Assembly (NCBI GenBank): GCA_965113315.1
Contig: OZ220372.1
DNA length: 64,000 nucleotides
Reading direction: 5' to 3' (one strand)
Source: Podarcis vaucheri
Lineage: Eukaryota
Every line of letters begins with the position of its first letter. The stretch's first letter is position 1. Positions 12,436 through 63,461 of this stretch are shown here, one piece after another. The notes beneath the pieces are model-generated. The model had not been told where the DNA came from. It saw only the letters and a list, made by a program, of their open reading frames with translations, and did not search any database. Both the position numbers and the translations under genes were made by a program.

Positions 12436-12549
12436 CCCAACTTTTTAACGTATTCGAGGTATCCTATTAGGATTTCATGATATACAGCAGTCCTCAGGCA
12501 TTTGGGGCGGAAGAAGTGAACACTGTCAAGGTAAGATATGTATACTCTC
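12436..12549 (-). CDS. EP300: EP300 exon 26 (114 nt; HAT, YLDS motif)
   Basis: tctag|GAGAGTA...TTGGG|gtaagc; [38 protein letters not shown]. Confidence 0.95.
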
Positions 12550-13976
12550 CTAGATAAAGAACAGAGAACATTCATAAATCCAGGCCATAACCAGAAACAT
12601 TATTCAAATACCTCACCATTCCATTTTCCCCCCATTACCAAGGAAAAATGTCTGTTGGTGTTTGAATTGAGGTACTTTCAACATTTGAGTAATTTGTCTT
12701 CCTTCACATTTTTGTTTTGTTTACATAGCTATCTCAATTACATTGTCATTTCCCTGCCCAAACTTTTTCTCTATTTGCCATGTAATATTCCATACTTTGG
12801 GTCACCAACATGGCACCTGTGGGCACCATGGTGTCCTCAGAAACCCCCTTAGTGGCCACCAATACCCCTTGCCATTCAGTTCTAATGTTTTTTTAAATGA
12901 GCTTTTGGGGGGCTTACTTGTCTTGTATTTGTTCTGGGGAAGGTTGCCTATTTTAGAGGGTATGCTAACTGCTTTTTTAATATAATATTTGTTATCAGAG
13001 ATGTATAGGTGTTTTGTCTGTTGGGAGGGGGTATTATGAGCATCACTATTTTCTTCTTCTCTGAAACGAATATCTTGGGGTGTCCATGACAGTTTTGGAT
13101 CTCCAAAGGTGGCCTTAAAACTCCAAAAGTTGGGGCCCCTTGTTTTATATTGTATTTTACAGCACTCATCTCTGGAAGAAATTAATGTCAGAAAGGTTCA
13201 GTCACAAACCTTGGTTTGGTGCTACTAGAATGAACCTTCAAGAAGCTTTAGGCTTGCATGCTGTGATTTTATGTGAACTGGAAAACTAGGATTTGTCTTT
13301 GGCCAGAAAACGGGATAAAACTTTTGTTTCCAACACTGGCTCGCAGGTGAAGTACTAACCATAGTCTGACAGTTCAGACAAATGACTAACTCTGACTTGC
13401 CTCAGATCAGAGAGAGAACTGTCCTGTGCAATGTAGGGCAAAAAGTGCACATGCAAGTCAAAAGCTCCTTGAAGGTTTGTACTTATAGTATCAAGTCACA
13501 GTTGATATTTAAACCAGTCCTGCAAACTTGTTGGGCTAGATATCTCTCTGGCATGCAAACCTCAAATGTTGGATGTTCTCAAGTGTTTTGTAAGGCAAGT
13601 CTATTACAGTAACAAACATATATAGTCTCATTAACAATGCAGCATAATAAATAGAAATAATGTCAGGAGAGAAAAATGTGGTACTGGTTTACATGGTGCC
13701 ACTTCTAAGAAGTATTAACATCTCTCAAATACCGAGTACTTAGCTTGCATTAAGACTTTAGGCATTACTTGACCTCTATAAATAGGTCACTCATAGGCTG
13801 CTTTCCCCCATTCAAGAGATATGGGCACATTATGTGGCTAGCACAATGGTCTGAGGATACATCTCCCAACAATTATTGCAATAGTTTAACAATCCATCCC
13901 CAAGTAGAAGACCAATATGAGCAGATGAGCTTATTCATTTAATTTTGTAGAAAATATTGAATTTAAGGGGGAAACC

Positions 13977-17510: not shown

Positions 17511-18339
17511 CTGAAATAGAAATGGGGAAAAAAGAAATTCAAAATATATTCTTAACCAAAAGGTGAATAATCTCCACAAAAATATTCCTTTGATATTTTC
17601 TAACATCCTGATACCCAGTACTTATTTCAACCATTATTTCTTTTTTTAAAAAAGGATAGCATATTGGATTTGATCAATGTTTTAGTATGTATCAACAATA
17701 AATTAGGAAATCACTAAAAGGTCTTATTGCCAAAAATATGTTTTATCAATTAACTTCCCTTTTCCGGTTTAAGATGAGCACTAATTTTAAGTTGATCCAG
17801 TGATTAATGTACACTATACTACCACTTCAGCCGTTTCCCTTTAGCACTTTCTTCAAAGGAGAGCATAAATCCCAACTAGGACAATATACTGGATGGACAG
17901 AATGGAGGATGCTGTGGAGAATGTTGGCCTGCCTTCTGAAATACTGCATCATGGACCATATAAATGATGTTCTCTGTGCATTCTGTGATCTGTGGCAGCA
18001 GTAGTAAGGTTATTGGAACTAGAAAATCAAGCTTCCTGGGATCTGAGTTGTAGAAAGTCCCTCTAAAGGCAGCATTGATATTACATAGGAGTATGTTAAC
18101 AAATGTCTATTAAGAGGGCAAGTTTATCAACTGACTTGAAAATAGCAACTTAATGGCAAGCGTTTTAGAAAAACAATTTTAAGCTGGCATGGTTGCTGTT
18201 TTAAATTAGACCACCAGCACTCTTTCCAGATAGAACTGTAGTCATTTTGCCATTTTTTAAATTGTACACAAAAAGCACATCATCAACAAATTACCATCTT
18301 TGTAAGAAAAAAGGAAAGAAAAAGCAGGAAGCAACCCAC

Positions 18340-18417
18340 CCAGATGGCCAGATTGTCTCATTGTGAAGCACACAAATCTGATGCATTTTTCTTCCACATT
18401 CTATACATTCAACAAAC
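18340..18417 (-). CDS. EP300: EP300 exon 22 (78 nt; PHD)
   Basis: ttccag|GTTTGTT...TCTGG|gtgggt; FVECIECGRKMHQICVLHNETIWPSG. Confidence 0.94.
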
Positions 18418-19098
18418 CTGGAAGAGAGAATCAAAGTATAAGCAACACAGGAAGTTGTTGAAGATAACTGATTTAGAAAAAATGTGTTGGAACTGAAGAT
18501 TATGTAGCCCAAGTACAAAATATTCAGAACTGTACGATTTCAAACCTGTTGATCTGCTGTACATGTATCTTTTCTCAGCAACAGTCTAGTGTACTATGCC
18601 CAAATGCAAACCACTACTCCCCATATGGTCTACATTGATTTTAGTTATGCATTATATAGCTTCTCTTTTCTTACATTCCACTACTAAAAGAATTCACAGC
18701 AACTAAGATTCCTGTACATCTAAGTCTGAAGGCAGAACTAGGTACATGACAAAGCACAGTTAAATGTTTACAAAGAGGATTGGGAGGCTTTTGAAAAAGT
18801 GAAGTCAATTTTTTATACTTCAAAACAAATATATTCAATATAAATTTGTAATATTGACTAAAGTAATCAAAGGCTTTTCTACCCCAAACTCAGATTATGT
18901 GGCTATACTTAGGCAGGCAAATATTTGCTTTCTTAAGGTACAATACACCATCAATATTGCAGGTGATAAACTAAGAGAATAATCCTAAAGCCTTCCACTC
19001 ACCCCTCCCACCCCCCTGCAAAAATAAATGAATAAATGGTGAAAAAAACTTTCATTTTTAAAATGACAAGTGATTTGAGCTGCTCAAACATGACTTAC

Positions 19099-21460: not shown

Positions 21461-23528
21461 TCAAACCCCTTCATTATAAGTTGTTGTTCTTTTTTACTAT
21501 GTATTTTGTGGTTTTTATATTGTAATTTAATGTTGTGAACTAAGTGCCCTGAGATCTGTGGATGAAGGGCAGTATACAAAATGAATAAACGTAAAGTTTG
21601 GGGAAGGACAGGGGAGTGGCAATTGTTTGTATTTTTGTATTATTACTATTTGTGGGGGAGAGATATTTTGCCTGCTTTAGTGTGTGTGTATCTAAGCATT
21701 ACCTGTTAACATTCTGTGATGTTTATTTAACAAAGTTTATATACTGCTTGATTGTAATAAATCTCTAAGTGGTTTACAAGACATGTTAATGTAATGTCAA
21801 CAAAAAAAGTTAAAACAGGTACTTTAAAATGTTCAACGATCAAATGTGCATATAATGAGGTAAGGTGATCTCACAAGTAAATGGATCCCAAGCTGTTGAG
21901 GGCTTTGTATTAATATATTAATAGTAACGCCTTGAACTTGGCCTGGATATGAAAGGATATTTTGTAGTGCCTATAACAGTTTCTCAGATTTCAAAGAGTG
22001 CTCTTGGACTGGGGGAAAAATCTGAACATCTAGGATGTTCTTGGTGGTGATGTTCCAGTTATGAAATTGTTGCCTAGAGAAGCTTTTCCTGGCTAGTACC
22101 TTTCACCTTTTAAAGGGTAGGAAACTTTCCTTTTCTGGAAGACGTCTGCTGCCTCAGAATCCAACCAGACTAAAAATTATGTCTCTTGAGATCCTGTGTA
22201 TTTTAGCATTAAAAATGTATTTTAAAGCATTTTAGGCACTTTTTCTCCAAAAATCTACTACATATTTTCTCCTGTAGGTTAAATTAGTGGTGGACAAGAC
22301 TGAAGACTAAGTTTTTAGCTAAGTCTCCTTCCAAGCGCTTCTTGTTTAATCCTCGGCATCAGGCTCTTTCCTGCTTCTAAAACCTTCCCTGTTTATATAT
22401 TTTCACATATAACCAGAATCCATCAGGCAAAGGATCCCCACTTACTGCAATTAAGCAATCTATTTCACATATTATGGAACTATCAGAACAACATTACAAA
22501 TATTGAAGTTGAAGCAAGGGAGCCTTACACATTGACTCAGTCCAGATTTCACGACAAGTCACACATCAGCATGACAAGAGTGAGCCACAACAAGCCTTGA
22601 GCTTGTGCACTCCCCTCCTGAGAGTTCCAATGGTTCCACTTCTGGGTTAGATTAACCGCAACATCATGTCATCTGAACTTAACTTAAACTGTGGCTAGCA
22701 TTAACTATGGGTTGTTTGAAACAAGCATGCTTCATAACACATGGTTTGAAGTTGAGTTGTTGCAAGCCATAGTTAAGGTTAGTCACAGTTTAGGGTTTGG
22801 ACAACATGCAGTTCTCATCTCATCCTTGTAGCTGTGCCTAAGGAGAAGAGGATGTGGCGTTCAAATATGGCCAATATGTAAAGGCACATAAATATTCTAA
22901 GTGTCAGAACATGGTTGCAACCTCCAGCAAACAATTCCTATGAACGCTCTGCTCCAACATAACCCTATTTTGAGCAGGAAAATCTGTCACCCGTGTTTTC
23001 AAATTTAGGCCTGCTTTCAGTTAGGTACCTGCCTGAACAATTCCTTACTGGATCTCCTGCTCAACAGGTTAAAGGTAGTCATGGTGTGTATGTGTGTGCA
23101 TGCACATGCACAAAATAGTTAAAAGTTAAAGCAAGCTGTGAAGTCTCTTTTCTACAAGCAGAAGCAACAAAAAATTTTGCAGGCTCAGGTGGGACTGGAA
23201 TTCTTAAACATTAGGTCTTTATTAAATCTAACATATAAACTGGAATAATGCTTCTACTTTTCAAAAGTGGTTTTTCATATTCTCACCAAAATATGAATGT
23301 GTTTTAAAAGCTAAAGCTCATTCTGAAACATAAGATATGTCTTGTTTTCAAATAATATTCCTGTCCTCTGTTCCTCCCATAATTGCACAAGGCCTCAGCA
23401 TTAAATAAGGAATTTTACCATAAATTTGATGTAAATTGTTTAATAGTATTTAGAGTATGTGATTGACTAATGCTATGATAAATGTTGTAAGAAATTTAAA
23501 AATAATTAGAAAGGAGATAGCTACTCAC

Positions 23529-23609
23529 GTTTGAGGCTGTGATGGGTCGTCCCCCAAAGAAACGCTCTCTCCTTGGATTTCATTGAAGCACTTCTCACAG
23601 AAATGATAC
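23529..23609 (-). CDS. EP300: EP300 exon 20 (81 nt, short form; RING)
   Basis: cgacag|GTATCAT...CAAAC|gtgagt; YHFCEKCFNEIQGESVSLGDDPSQPQT. Confidence 0.95.
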
Positions 23610-23639
23610 CTGTCGGCAAGAAGGCCATATTTGGGTGAA
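23610..23639 (-). CDS. EP300: Alternative 30-nt 5' extension of exon 20 (adds SSPKYGLLAD)
   Basis: Upstream acceptor ggaacag|TTCACCC, exactly 30 nt 5' of the canonical AG; in frame, no stop; first AG after a 347-nt AG-free zone. Confidence 0.7.
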
Positions 23640-23641
23640 CT

Positions 23642-23988
23642 GTTCCGTCCACACAACACAGCCCAAGCCAAGCAACGGAGCCACCAATCACAGCAGGCCA
23701 AGGAGGGGGGCGGGAGCAGAGAGCAGGTCATCAACGGCGACAGGGACATTCAATGATGAAGATTTATGGGACCCAGAGTTTGTGTTTGGTTTTGTTTTTT
23801 TGTTTGGGTTGGTTTTTTTGCAATCAAAGCCAAGTGCAGACAACGACAAGCATGAAGGAGAAATAAAAAAACAACACACACACACGAACAAAGAAATAGG
23901 GATTTGCAGGACGAAAAACAAAAACACAGAAGCAAGACAGGACAACACAAAGCAGAAAGCCAAGGCAAAGCACAGATTAGCATTAAAT
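23642..23988 (-). promoter_or_regulatory. AG-exclusion zone with putative distant branch point (TGCTAAT, A at 23977) and long U/UG-rich tract
   Basis: No CT dinucleotide on the plus strand between 23642 and 23988. Confidence 0.65.
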
Positions 23989-24509
23989 CTCTCAAATGGG
24001 ATCACAAGCAGCAAATTATAGCAAATAAAAAGAGTATTCCATTTTAGTATGCCCATGCCCTCCTCATTTCAATAATCAATGCTACAATAAAGCAGAGAAT
24101 CAAAATGAAGAAAGGGTAAGAGCAATTGCTGCTCTGACATCTGCATCAGGGTAGCAACTCTTTTCACAAGAACATCTGCCAGGAGAGGGCTGGAAAGGGG
24201 TGAAAACAATCCATCTTGAGAATGCTCAAATGTTGACAGGCCAGTCCTTCCCCTCAAAGCATTTTTTGTTTGCAACATCTGTTTAAAGCAGCAGTAACCA
24301 TCCCCAAAACAATTTCTATGCAATTGTTCATGATCTGCCAAAATGACAGGTGCTTTAAGGCATCTGACAATCAGCCATGCATATGTATGTTCTTAATATG
24401 TGACGTACTGATGTTCCATGCCTCCAAATTGATGTATAATTGACATATTAAAAGGATTCCATCTTCATCTAAATTAATGTTGAATGCTTTACTCAAGATG
24501 TTTTTTTAC

Positions 24510-25317: not shown

Positions 25318-26106
25318 TGCAGGTGGTAAAATTAAGATGCACGGTGATGCTTATTTAATCAAACAACTCCAGAGTTCACTCCTCAGTTAATTTCCACTTC
25401 AGAAAAGGGCTATCGAGAACAAACTGAAGGCTGCAGGTCCAGTGGAGTACAGAGAAGTTGCTGGTTTACTGAAATTCCCATAAAAGATGCCAGACCAGGT
25501 AAATCTTGGTCTGATGCAGTGCAAGATTTACCTTCTTAAACAAAAGTACATACTCAGGAACACTTGACAGTTATGCCTCAATAGTTAAGAGATCCCAAGC
25601 ACACACACAGGAGTGCTACTAGCATAGAAATTCTAGCTGAGAGTGAGAGACTGTAAGAGGCCATGGCAGAGTCAAGTCAGCCCCTCTCTGACCTTGCAGG
25701 CATCCTGCTTTTCACGCAGCTCAAACAAAACACAGCTTTACAACTACAGCTTTAGTTGAAATAACTGTGATCTAAAACAGGAAATATGTCTCCCTTAGGA
25801 CAAAACTGAATGTTAAATGCAGTGAACTCAAGATGCAAACATGCATGCTTTTCTGTGCACTGTTTCATACAGAGGAAAAAATAATGGCTTTACTGCAAAA
25901 GCTTTGAACTTATCTAAAGCATATGGAGAGTTTATATTAACATCCTAATTTCTGAAACAGGAAGAAAAAGTCAATTGATGCAACAAGGCACTTGGCTTGC
26001 ATGGGAAGTAATCTGCTGAGTATGCTATAAATATAAGTGCATGCCTGCCTATATCTAATATAATTTTTCACAGCAGGTGCAATGTTGTACCCAAGCATTT
26101 TCTTAC

Positions 26107-26195
26107 CTGTTTTGGTAACTGTAATATGTAGCATCTCGTGGGATTGTGCATAACTGTTTGCCATAGCAACATAAAGTCTGTGGTGAAAACTCCAA
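26107..26195 (-). CDS. EP300: EP300 exon 19 (89 nt; RING N-half)
   Basis: ttcag|TTGGAG...AAACAG|gtaaga; LEFSPQTLCCYGKQLCTIPRDATYYSYQN. Confidence 0.95.
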
Positions 26196-35903: not shown

Positions 35904-36021
35904 CCTGCTATTTGCTGATTCATACATGTCGCCTTCTACTTTCCGAGCATAGGAAACAAGATTTGCCATGCGCCTATCTTTTAGTGCTGCAGGGTCAGGA
36001 GTTGGAAATATGGCTTGTACT
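35904..36021 (-). CDS. EP300: EP300 exon 9 (118 nt; KIX)
   Basis: tgcag|AGTACAA...AGCAGG|gtaagt; [39 protein letters not shown]. Confidence 0.95.
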
Positions 36022-36916
36022 CTGCAAGAATATAGAGGGAAACCTTGAACCAACTATTTGTCTCCTGAACTTCTGGATCCAAAAATCTAATGCCCACAGC
36101 TAGAGTTTATGTTATTCTTAATTTTTGTCAACTTCTGGTAAAAGCCAAGAACAATCATAGATGGGAATTCTGTAGCTGTACTGGACCAAGAGGTACAAAT
36201 TGTCTAATTCAACTCACTGAAAGCTTGCAACATCCAGAAAACATAAGATGCCTTAATTAGGAATAGGTGTTCAGTACAAATATGAAATTAGCTGCTGTGA
36301 TGCTAGCTCACAGGCAGAACAAATTCTGGAATAAGAAATTGAAGAGAATCCAGCAGAGTATAGCTTGGTACAGCAGGAAGAAAGAGAGAGTCATGATAAC
36401 TGTTTCTCAGGCAAAACAAGCTTTTATAACCTTGTTATTTCTGGGAATGCGACTGATCCAGTAGAATCACCTTACAGCCTCAGAGGAAATGATAAGTCTT
36501 CTGAACCTTTCAATCTGTAACATGAAGTGTCTTACCACAAGGGGCAGCAGAGCATAGATCCAAAAGTTCTCAGTTCTAGGTCCAGGGATTCCTAACAAAA
36601 GGCTACTTTCCACTCATACGCTCTTTGAATATGATGTCTGAATAAGAACCAAAGTTTGCCACACTGAAACATCTATTGTCTCAATAAAACATGTCTTGAC
36701 TGGGCCAGAAGACAGACAACAAAACCAATCCTCATCCAATCAGTGCAGTATGTGAATTATGATTAAGAACTGTCCCTTACTCAACAGTGTGAGCAACACT
36801 GTTACCTACAGCACTACTAAACAAGCCCCTGAAGCATGATAGCAAACACGGCCTGGGCTTTTTCTTTTCAATTCACCTGTTTTTCCCCATCATGAAGAAA
36901 TGGCAATGGTCTAGAT

Positions 36917-61302: not shown

Positions 61303-63461
61303 CTAGGGAAAGGAAAAAACAAAAGAAATGGTTTAGAACACTGAGAATATATTTCATATAAAAGTTAGCTCTTTTCAATGCTGGCACAATATCACTTTTC
61401 TTATCTAATTAACTATGCAGCAAGCCAAGAAGCATAAACAGGTTTGTTTTTTTAAAGTATTTCACATTTTCCAACGATATAAAAGCCTCACACAATTGGC
61501 TACCCTTCTTCTCACTTCATTAAGACTAAAATGGGGAAATGATTCTGGAGAACAGAGGAACAATTCTGGGAACACATTTGTAATAAACTGCCATTTGGAT
61601 CAATCTCAATTAGAACTTGAGAAAATGCTTTAAAGATGGCACATCACTAGTAGATGTGCCCAGCCAGATTATAGAGAATTAATCATAACACACCCGACCT
61701 TTGCTAGCAGGAATGCAATTTATCTGTTTCTCGTACACATGTGTGGTTTTGCCCCAAAATTATTCCCTTTCGGGAAAAAGTTTTTCAAACAATCAAATGA
61801 TGGGACAATAGCTACAGCCCTACAATAATTTTTCTCCTCGGATTAAGAACATAACCAATAAAAACCTGATTCTCTATTTATTAACTGGAGCTAGATTAGT
61901 GACTGCAAAAAAATGGGAAAACTTTAAATGCCAATCTTTTTGAAGCCTGGATTTCACAGGTATTGTGCTTCTGGTCAGATTAACCATTTCACAAAAGGAA
62001 TATTGACTGGGGGGGGAGGAAAACTCACACCTTCTATATGACAAGTTATCCTTTTATTGACTTTCTTAAGACAATCGACTCATGGAACCTTATGAAGAAA
62101 CACTTTCATTTGATCGCCTTTCTTGGGACATCTAAAACTACAACCATCAGCCTCTATTTTTCTTTCTTTTCTGCATAACTACTAAGCTCTGCATTCCTTG
62201 TTTAGTTACTTGAAATTAAAAATCATTTTTAAAAATTCACATTTTTCCTCCACAACCCTACAGAATATGTCAGGCTGAGCAATAGTAACTGACCAAAGGT
62301 GAACAATGCTTAGCAATGGCTTAAACCAAGGGCTCTCCTGTGCAAATCAAATAAAATATCAACTATACCACATTCCTTCATATTTATATATTCAAGGCTT
62401 AATTTCTTTTACTCCTGCAAGATTCTAACTCATGTTAAAAGCTTTCATTGTAAAAATAATGTCACATAGTGTTTGTAAACTATTGGTTGTGGTGAAAGAA
62501 CTGGATCTGGCTGGAAGGCCAGATTCCTACCTCCCCTATTCTGCAACCCCTCAGCAGGTTTGCTTTGACAGATGGGCAGTGCTGACCATCTATCAATCAT
62601 CTGACATCACATGGCTCCTTTTCCTTTTTGCCCATGCAGTTTGAAATCAAGCCACTGCAGGCAAGGCACAACATTTCTCAAGCACCAATGATCAGTTGAT
62701 TGTTGGCACTTGTAAAGCACTGTGCCTTCTTGGCTAATCCCAGTGGGGCTCACTGTCAGTGCACATCACCTGATCAACACTGTCAGCATGTCCCGCTTGC
62801 AAATAAACAATTGGAAGCCCACTTTAAGCTTCCAATAGCTCATTTGGAGCACGTCCTTGCCTACCCTATCCACGACATCACACAGTACTTCAGGTGTCAG
62901 GCAGCTGGCTATGGCAGCCAGCCTTGCAGGTCAAACACTAGGTCTAATAATGTACACAAGCCAGAGGTTTCACACCCATGCCATATGCCAAGAGTTCAAA
63001 GCACTCCAGATATGAATTTGGTAAATCTTACAAATAGCCTTGCAAAGTAGGTCTGTAGTTACACCAGACTGAAGATGGGGGCAAGAAAACAGTAGCTAAT
63101 GAAGACACCTAGCAAGCTCACAGCCGAAGTGAAATGAACCAGGAACTTACTGTGGAACACCAGTTTTCCTCATGTGCCACTATAAAGAATACTTCCTTCT
63201 TGGTTTTCGTTCAGCAACTGAATTGCCTAGACTAAAGGTCTTAAACACGCTATCGTTCACACAAGTATATTGAGTTTGCATCAGCTCAATCTACTTAAAC
63301 CTAAAACAGCTTTAAGCACAGAAATACAGGCAGGAAACCTTGGTTCTATTCAGCAGAGCACATATAAGCACACACTGCTTCTGTTCTGCCTTCTTCTGGG
63401 TACCAAAGGACCCACGTGTTGGTGATCACATGTCATTTGGACACGCCTAAAATGGTCACCA

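Follow-up and report, generated by a model that had tools for sequence, protein, structure and literature searches.

What is a run of 347 nucleotides without a single AG doing at the end of intron 19 of EP300? The stretch of DNA analysed here, called the window throughout, comprises 64,000 nt of the lizard Podarcis vaucheri (contig OZ220372.1). A sequence-only reading of the window had noticed the run and proposed that the choice between a distant and a proximal branch point switches p300 between two RING isoforms.

Position of the AG-free tract within EP300

Exons were placed by combining stop-free stretches with local tblastn of a public Podarcis p300 protein (P0342), each exon being searched singly. 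EP300 exons 2–31 lie on the minus strand between positions 61303 and 3859 (about 57.5 kb), while exon 1 falls outside the window. The last exon in the window shares 99.2–99.3% identity with the p300 proteins of Podarcis lilfordi and P. raffonei. By this tblastn placement the exon downstream of the AG-free tract is exon 20, of 31 in total, which agrees with the number it had been given earlier. Elsewhere in the gene, NAGNAG-type tandem acceptors with AGs 2–3 nt apart are seen at exon 9 (36019–36023) and exon 26 (12546–12551). The elements at the centre of the analysis are the following.

26107–26195, minus strand: exon 19, with donor GT at 26106/26105 and a match to Pfam RING_CBP-p300
23989–23992, minus strand: two overlapping AGs (GAGA), the 5' limit of the AG-free tract, from sequence
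23642–23988, minus strand: the AG-free tract, putative AG-exclusion zone of the upstream acceptor AG1, from sequence, script, shuffles and same-gene comparison
23640–23641, minus strand: AG1, the upstream alternative acceptor, from sequence and from insert isoforms in public proteins
23610–23639, minus strand: a 30-nt in-frame extension encoding ten amino acids and ending in a second acceptor, AG2 (23611/23610), from sequence
23529–23609, minus strand: the 81-nt core of exon 20 by homology, with donor GT at 23528/23527

Statistical support for AG depletion

Sequence inspection and a script agreed that the minus (sense) strand contains zero AG over the 347 nt from 23988 to 23642, confirming the AG-free run previously described upstream of the acceptor at 23640–23641. 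The flanking AGs are at 23990/23989 on the upstream side and 23641/23640 on the downstream side. On both strands of the 64-kb window, no other AG-free gap is as long, with the runners-up measuring 138 nt (minus strand) and 172 nt (plus strand). The window contains 4,545 AGs in all, or 7.1 per 100 nt, and the rest of intron 19, upstream of the GAGA edge, has a normal density of 6.3 per 100 nt.

Given local composition (A 57, G 71, C 86 and T 133 across the tract), about 5–12 AGs would be expected, with P ranging from 0.003 to <0.0002. When mononucleotides were shuffled over the whole tract, the mean was 11.7 AGs and 0 of 20,000 sequences were AG-free. Shuffling within 50-nt blocks gave a mean of 8.7 and again 0 of 20,000, within 25-nt blocks a mean of 7.7 (P about 0.0001) and within 10-nt blocks, the strictest composition control, a mean of 4.7 (P 0.003). 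As a control for base order, GA occurs seven times in the tract and AG never (binomial P 0.0033 at the AG:GA ratio of the window). Together with the shuffles, this count indicates that the depletion is real and specific to the order A-then-G.

Support is nevertheless uneven along the tract. The last 136 nt alone reach P 0.006–0.03, and for the distal 257 nt by themselves P lies between 0.03 in 10-nt blocks and 0.0012 in 25-nt blocks. A T/G-rich section of 167 nt gives P 0.05–0.11 and a G-free A/C-rich section P 0.31. Depletion of the distal part is only marginal when composition is controlled most strictly. Scarcity of A or absence of G accounts for much of it, and this composition may be functional in its own right.

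Within the same gene, the AG-free zones of the other 29 EP300 acceptors in the window span 18–79 nt (median 39), against 350 nt for AG1; these acceptors were located from the ends of local tblastn matches with the adjacent AG chosen by eye, and the zone lengths are approximate.

Tandem acceptors and a ten-residue insert

The acceptor that had been assigned to exon 20 does close the tract; it is, however, the upstream one of two tandem acceptors and not the canonical site. By protein reading the canonical acceptor is AG2, which has an AG-free zone of 31 nt. Exon 19 stops after two codon bases, and the frame is therefore kept with either acceptor. The extension between them is stop-free and contains, besides AG2 and a short pyrimidine run, the TTCAC (A at 23636) that had been pointed out within it.

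The description of exon 20 as a RING-domain exon held in part. Pfam RING_CBP-p300 matches exon 19 over model positions 14–40 of 40 (E 2.7e-16), through the last residue of that exon and exactly to its end; residues inserted at the junction therefore adjoin the Pfam RING segment directly. The Pfam PHD_P300 match begins in exon 22 (18333–18419), and exons 20–21 are in neither Pfam model. We assume that the structural RING of p300 continues through exons 20–21.

Using the last exon as a query against protein representatives, we retrieved a fish p300 (P0007) and a CBP (P0002). Two homologue searches scored on the HAT domain and one cluster look-up then provided 271 public p300-type proteins, in all of which the pattern at the exon 19/20 junction was counted, with taxa taken from record names. 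Among these 271 listed proteins, 40 carry the insert and 217 have the plain junction. The remainder comprise 4 models without exon 20, 2 aberrant duck models and 8 fragments that do not include the region. The insert always takes the form SSP[KQT][YF]GL[LIV]A[DN], with ten residues in 39 of the 40 carriers and nine in one.

The listed carriers are 26 teleost proteins, 1 from a lungfish (Protopterus X1), 7 from frogs (Nanorana, Dendrobates X2 and five of Xenopus laevis), 3 from squamates and 3 from mammals (two of Ursus maritimus, and Tamandua X1). The squamate carriers, out of 21 squamate proteins listed, are two of Pseudonaja textilis and Podarcis raffonei X1 (P0342). The lizard window encodes exactly the tetrapod form of the insert, and its peptide is identical to those of P0342, P0311 and P0312. 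By annotation, both forms are found in Xenopus laevis, where 5 of 9 full-length proteins listed have the insert, in Protopterus (X1 and X2), in Pseudonaja and Notechis, and in Podarcis. The prediction of two p300 isoforms is therefore borne out in public annotation by 40 of the 271 proteins listed, the congener's X1 included. No insert was found in the 82 bird, turtle and crocodilian proteins listed, 78 of which have a readable junction, nor in the listed shark and coelacanth proteins; with 15 of up to 40 members listed per cluster, these absences carry little weight. Birds, turtles and crocodilians may have lost the insert or may seldom use it. A conserved 30-nt, in-frame, stop-free insert across bony vertebrates, as seen in annotation models, is hard to explain unless it is translated.

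Several observations from the same region stand apart from the insert count. The codons of the insert overlap the AG2 branch-point candidate, its pyrimidine run and its YAG, and only Asp or Asn occurs at the final position, both encoded by codons with a third-position pyrimidine; splicing signals may have shaped the peptide no less than protein function has. The four p300 models without exon 20 come from Collichthys (P0184), Scortum (P0205), Turdus (P0269) and Dipodomys (P0331). Skipping this 81-nt exon would keep the frame, and its absence could reflect annotation error or real cassette use, the latter of which would fit the distant-branch-point class. In the two duck (Cairina moschata) models, P0284 and P0286, 23 unrelated residues stand in place of the last part of exon 19 and the whole of exon 20, either through an alternative intronic exon or through a modelling error.

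Branch-point candidates within and beyond the tract

Four sites are candidates for the branch points of AG1 and AG2, three of them upstream of AG1.

23976–23980, minus strand: CTAAT, the far branch-point candidate, with A at 23977, 336 nt before AG1, from sequence motif
23701–23731, minus strand: nearer candidates A 23731 (TTGAT, −90) and A 23728 (ATGAC, −87), followed by a C/T tract, from sequence
23681–23692, minus strand: TGTGATTGGTGG, with A 23688 (in TGAT) at −47 from AG1, from sequence

The fourth, the A of TTCAC at 23636, lies between the two AGs, 25 nt upstream of AG2. The complete set of A's in the 100 nt before AG1 is 23731, 23728, 23688, 23648, 23644 and 23643, corresponding to −90, −87, −47, −7, −3 and −2. 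There is thus no A from −8 to −46, nor any yUnAy match within 90 nt upstream, and the AG1 branch point therefore cannot sit in the usual window of 18–40 nt.

The CTAAT at the far end of the tract, already singled out as a good branch-point match, is the sole CTRAY match in the last 420 nt of the intron. The 5' edge of the tract lies 12 nt before its A, and the 30 nt that follow are 73% pyrimidine. This closeness of the edge to the best motif, the normal AG frequency beyond it and the T-rich tract that comes after argue for the far site, and they match what Gooding et al. describe for verified distant branch points such as that of PTB exon 11 (PMC1431707). The marginal depletion of the distal part counts against it. 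The nearer candidates are accompanied by a C/T-rich tract of 27 nt (23727–23701) with three G's only, and with this strong tract they would suffice, making the far CTAAT unnecessary. Weaker yUnAy matches are found at −116, −183, −212 and −223 from AG1. The proposed switch between a distant and a proximal branch point accordingly stands as far as geometry goes, since the positions of the A's and the TTCAC at 23636 fit it; the nearer candidates with their C/T tract mean that the distant partner need not be the far one.

One fish protein also speaks against the far site. P0247, a low-quality cyprinid model, begins an exon about 26 codons before AG1, which would place an AG about 78 nt upstream of AG1 in that fish; an AG-free zone of 350 nt is probably not universal. 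The intron read-through peptide of this model aligns with the lizard intron in the exon frame (SL..SL..CDW) with a score of 38, reached by 59 of 2,000 shuffles (p about 0.03), and the other two frames gave nothing. In frame, TGTGATTGGTGG reads C-D-W, the same residues that recur in the read-through model. P0247 weakly suggests that the part of the tract with A 23688 and the C/T tract is a conserved core.

Composition, CpG content and folding

Two further sections make up much of the distal tract.

23822–23975, minus strand: a tract rich in T, G and C and poor in A, including T runs and a (GT)6 (23885–23874), from sequence
23778–23820, minus strand: an A/C-rich tract from which G and T are absent, from sequence

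The first of these is a possible long pyrimidine tract or protein-binding platform. The long U/UG/UGC-rich tract previously described past the CTAAT is readily seen in the base counts: the 167 nt that follow the motif hold T 89, G 33, C 32 and A 13 (53% T and 8% A). The A/C tract contains no G or T and therefore no yUnAy branch-point match. Across the whole AG-free tract we counted 24 TGT and 12 YGCY motifs, in addition to the (GT)6 and the T runs. Splicing factors that recognise UG or pyrimidine sequences typically bind such motifs.

The tract also keeps CpGs in an otherwise CpG-poor intron, as had been noted. It holds 8 (observed/expected 0.45), 5 of them in its last 100 nt, against 8 in the other 2,118 nt of the intron (0.10). 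This retention agrees with constraint across the whole tract. Just upstream of AG1, the CpG-retaining part at 23681–23716 (minus strand) includes a C run, ATTGG and TGGTGG; we take the C run to be GC-box-like and ATTGG to be an inverted CCAAT-like element.

RNA structure that would draw the far branch point near the acceptor was considered and rejected. The tract has a folding energy of −61.9 kcal/mol, against −71.4 kcal/mol for shuffles (z +2.08), and 98 of 100 shuffles fold at least as well. Its minimum-energy fold pairs the T/G tract with the A/C tract. Low structure is as expected for a single-stranded binding platform.

A repeat or transposon origin was likewise set aside, as local BLAST of the tract against the rest of the window returned short A-rich matches only; Tandem Repeats Finder reported, within the tract, the A/C tract alone, as T/G-rich units on the plus strand. 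The possibility of a hidden RNA gene was dropped too. The one Rfam match, a SNORD91-like hit in intron 19 at 25870–25959, lies on the opposite (plus) strand, scores 22.6 bits (gathering score 51; E 0.84) and is probably due to chance.

Branch-point choice as a candidate isoform switch

The explanation that we favour, with modest confidence, is that the tract is the AG-exclusion zone of AG1, a real and anciently conserved alternative acceptor of EP300 intron 19, and that the choice of branch point sets the isoform. Use of AG2 would yield the canonical protein, and use of AG1 would add ten residues directly after the Pfam p300 RING segment. AG1 lacks a usable branch-point A within 47 nt as well as a conventional pyrimidine tract; its lariat would therefore have to form further upstream, inside the tract. 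AG2 could use the TTCAC between the two AGs.

The rest of the proposed mechanism follows a scanning rule. In the part of Gooding et al. (2006) available to us (PMC1431707), the first AG past the branch point is used, with two exceptions: an AG no more than about 12–15 nt from the branch site is skipped, and AGs spaced by less than 12 nt compete with each other. If splicing takes the first AG it meets, and competition is absent between AGs separated by more than about 12 nt, a lariat anywhere in the tract would lead to AG1 and the long form, whereas a lariat at 23636 would lead to AG2 and the short form. A new AG arising downstream of a branch point in use would be spliced to and therefore selected against, and such selection would keep the tract free of AG. 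The use of AG1 in this animal, the positions of the branch points, the scanning and any regulation are inferred from sequence, and it is plausibly the choice of branch point that sets the isoform.

Where the lariats would form is a separate matter. Within this explanation, the chances are about even that the main branch points are those at −87/−90 or −47, and somewhat below even that the far CTAAT at −336 is used appreciably.

The alternative that survives best, which we consider possible but doubtful, is that both acceptors share one or more nearby branch points and are chosen between at a later step, through U2AF35, second-step factors or proteins bound near AG1, leaving the AG-free run as a by-product of low-complexity, protein-binding composition (the A-poor T/G-rich, G-free A/C and C/T tracts) and not of selection against AG. 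Segments of the tract are only weakly depleted when taken singly (P 0.05–0.11, 0.31 and 0.006–0.03), the 24 TGT, 12 YGCY, (GT)6 and T runs would suit such proteins, and large AG-free zones unrelated to splicing exist in the portion of Gooding et al. available (PMC1431707). Composition falls short of accounting for the tract as a whole, however, for which P is 0.003 even in 10-nt-block shuffles and in which GA occurs seven times. A shared nearby branch point also has to contend with the lack of any A from −8 to −46 of AG1, and AGs 30 nt apart would not compete under the scanning model set out in the same source (PMC1431707).

Far less probable is that AG1 goes unused in the lizard, with the 30 nt conserved as the branch point, pyrimidine tract and AG of AG2 and the long zone owed to chance and composition. 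The coincidence of the insert codons with the AG2 splicing signals could be understood in this way, as could the presence of the insert in just 3 of 21 squamate proteins listed. Against this, 39 of the 40 insert proteins, which range from teleosts to mammals, share a fixed length of 30 nt that keeps the frame and is free of stops; P. raffonei has the insert as isoform X1, and chance is excluded at P ≤ 0.003. The least credible alternative, that the CpG-retaining proximal part (about 23740–23680) is an intronic promoter or enhancer and the AG-free run incidental, can point to CCCGCCCCCC and ATTGG 15 nt apart and to 5 of 8 CpGs in the last 100 nt of the tract, but these motifs are short and unscored, an observed/expected ratio of 0.45 makes no CpG island, the in-frame likeness to P0247 suits a splicing element equally well and the absence of AG is left unexplained.

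Branch-point choice upstream of tandem acceptors could also be part of a wider design, although we think this unlikely. The 30 nt would then have a dual use, the codons for Ser-Ser-Pro ... Gly-Leu-Leu-Ala-Asp serving at once as the AG2 branch point, pyrimidine tract and YAG and as a peptide whose conservation spans more than 400 million years and which is inserted next to the RING occluding the acetyltransferase site of p300. The tract would be a protein-binding platform that shifts lariats between far and near positions, and the autoinhibition of p300 would in this way be tuned differently from tissue to tissue. Birds, turtles and crocodilians appear to have lost the switch entirely or almost entirely.

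Novelty and significance

In the part of a 2025 review of p300/CBP regulation available to us (PMC12547938), the RING of p300 is described as covering and restraining the catalytic site, and its removal or disturbance as raising activity; the string 'splic' occurs nowhere in that part. Our literature search returned no paper on the p300 insert or on intron 19 branch points, although the list by Gooding et al. of exons with zones of at least 150 nt and published human branch-point maps may already include the EP300 intron. The only EP300 splicing study found in that search concerns, in its available portion, exon 14 (PMC4770227). The insert isoform is already in public annotation, and the EP300 tract is among the longer AG-free zones described.

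A ten-residue insert at this position, kept from teleosts to mammals, would make a natural candidate for tuning the RING restraint of p300, a central acetyltransferase. The anatomy of the locus offers a simple, testable model in which branch-point choice would decide the isoform. It also marks out about 350 nt of intron where the gain of an AG could upset EP300 splicing, a point that matters for interpreting deep-intronic variants in the orthologous region of other species, provided that they conserve the zone.

Comparison with known systems

Three known systems resemble the EP300 locus, each covered here by the available part of its source. REPA elements are purine- or G-rich sequences between the pyrimidine tract and the 3' AG that are said to regulate alternative 3' splice sites (bioRxiv 10.1101/363804). 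Similarly, a G/T-rich spacer of about 58 nt lies between the EP300 C/T tract (23727–23701) and AG1. Unlike in REPA, the EP300 spacer has one GGG only, and hnRNP H/F binding there is hypothetical.

Akerman and Mandel-Gutfreund (2007) described conserved acceptor pairs 3–100 nt apart with raised intronic conservation and under-represented intronic AGs, and reported that it matters where the pyrimidine tract and branch point lie with respect to the two sites (PMC2018619). By annotation, the EP300 acceptors fall within this spacing, keep the frame and have both AGs in at least two species. They are like these pairs in lying 30 nt apart, in frame and annotated in many species. They are unlike them in an AG-free run that far exceeds the 100-nt scope and in conservation that extends to teleosts, compared with human and mouse.

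The closest likeness is to the distant-branch-point exons compiled by Gooding et al. (PMC1431707), among them PTB exon 11 (zone 381, branch point −351), nPTB (438), GABBR1 exon 23 (zone 287, branch point −275) and alpha-tropomyosin exon 3. The class is delimited by an AG-free zone of at least 100 nt, or at least 150 nt for the curated set (PMC1431707); the zone of AG1 (350 nt) exceeds both values, whereas that of AG2 (31 nt) falls below them. At the 5' end of the AG1 zone are a branch site (CTAAT) and a pyrimidine tract (73% pyrimidine), AG frequency upstream is normal (6.3 per 100 nt) and the conventional window of 18–40 nt contains no good branch site or pyrimidine tract. On sequence criteria AG1 joins the distant-branch-point, long AG-exclusion-zone class, which is itself defined by a mapped lariat. 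The EP300 case departs from the cassette and mutually exclusive exons of that compilation in that its zone would serve an alternative acceptor of a tandem pair; in the material available, acceptor-type events are not in excess among large AG-free zones (PMC1431707). It differs too in having a canonical acceptor 30 nt downstream with an ordinary zone of 31 nt and in being known from sequence alone. What it shares with these exons is a 350-nt zone whose 5' end carries a branch site close to the consensus and a T-rich tract, normal AG upstream, no conventional branch-point candidate and, by annotation, alternative splicing (PMC1431707).
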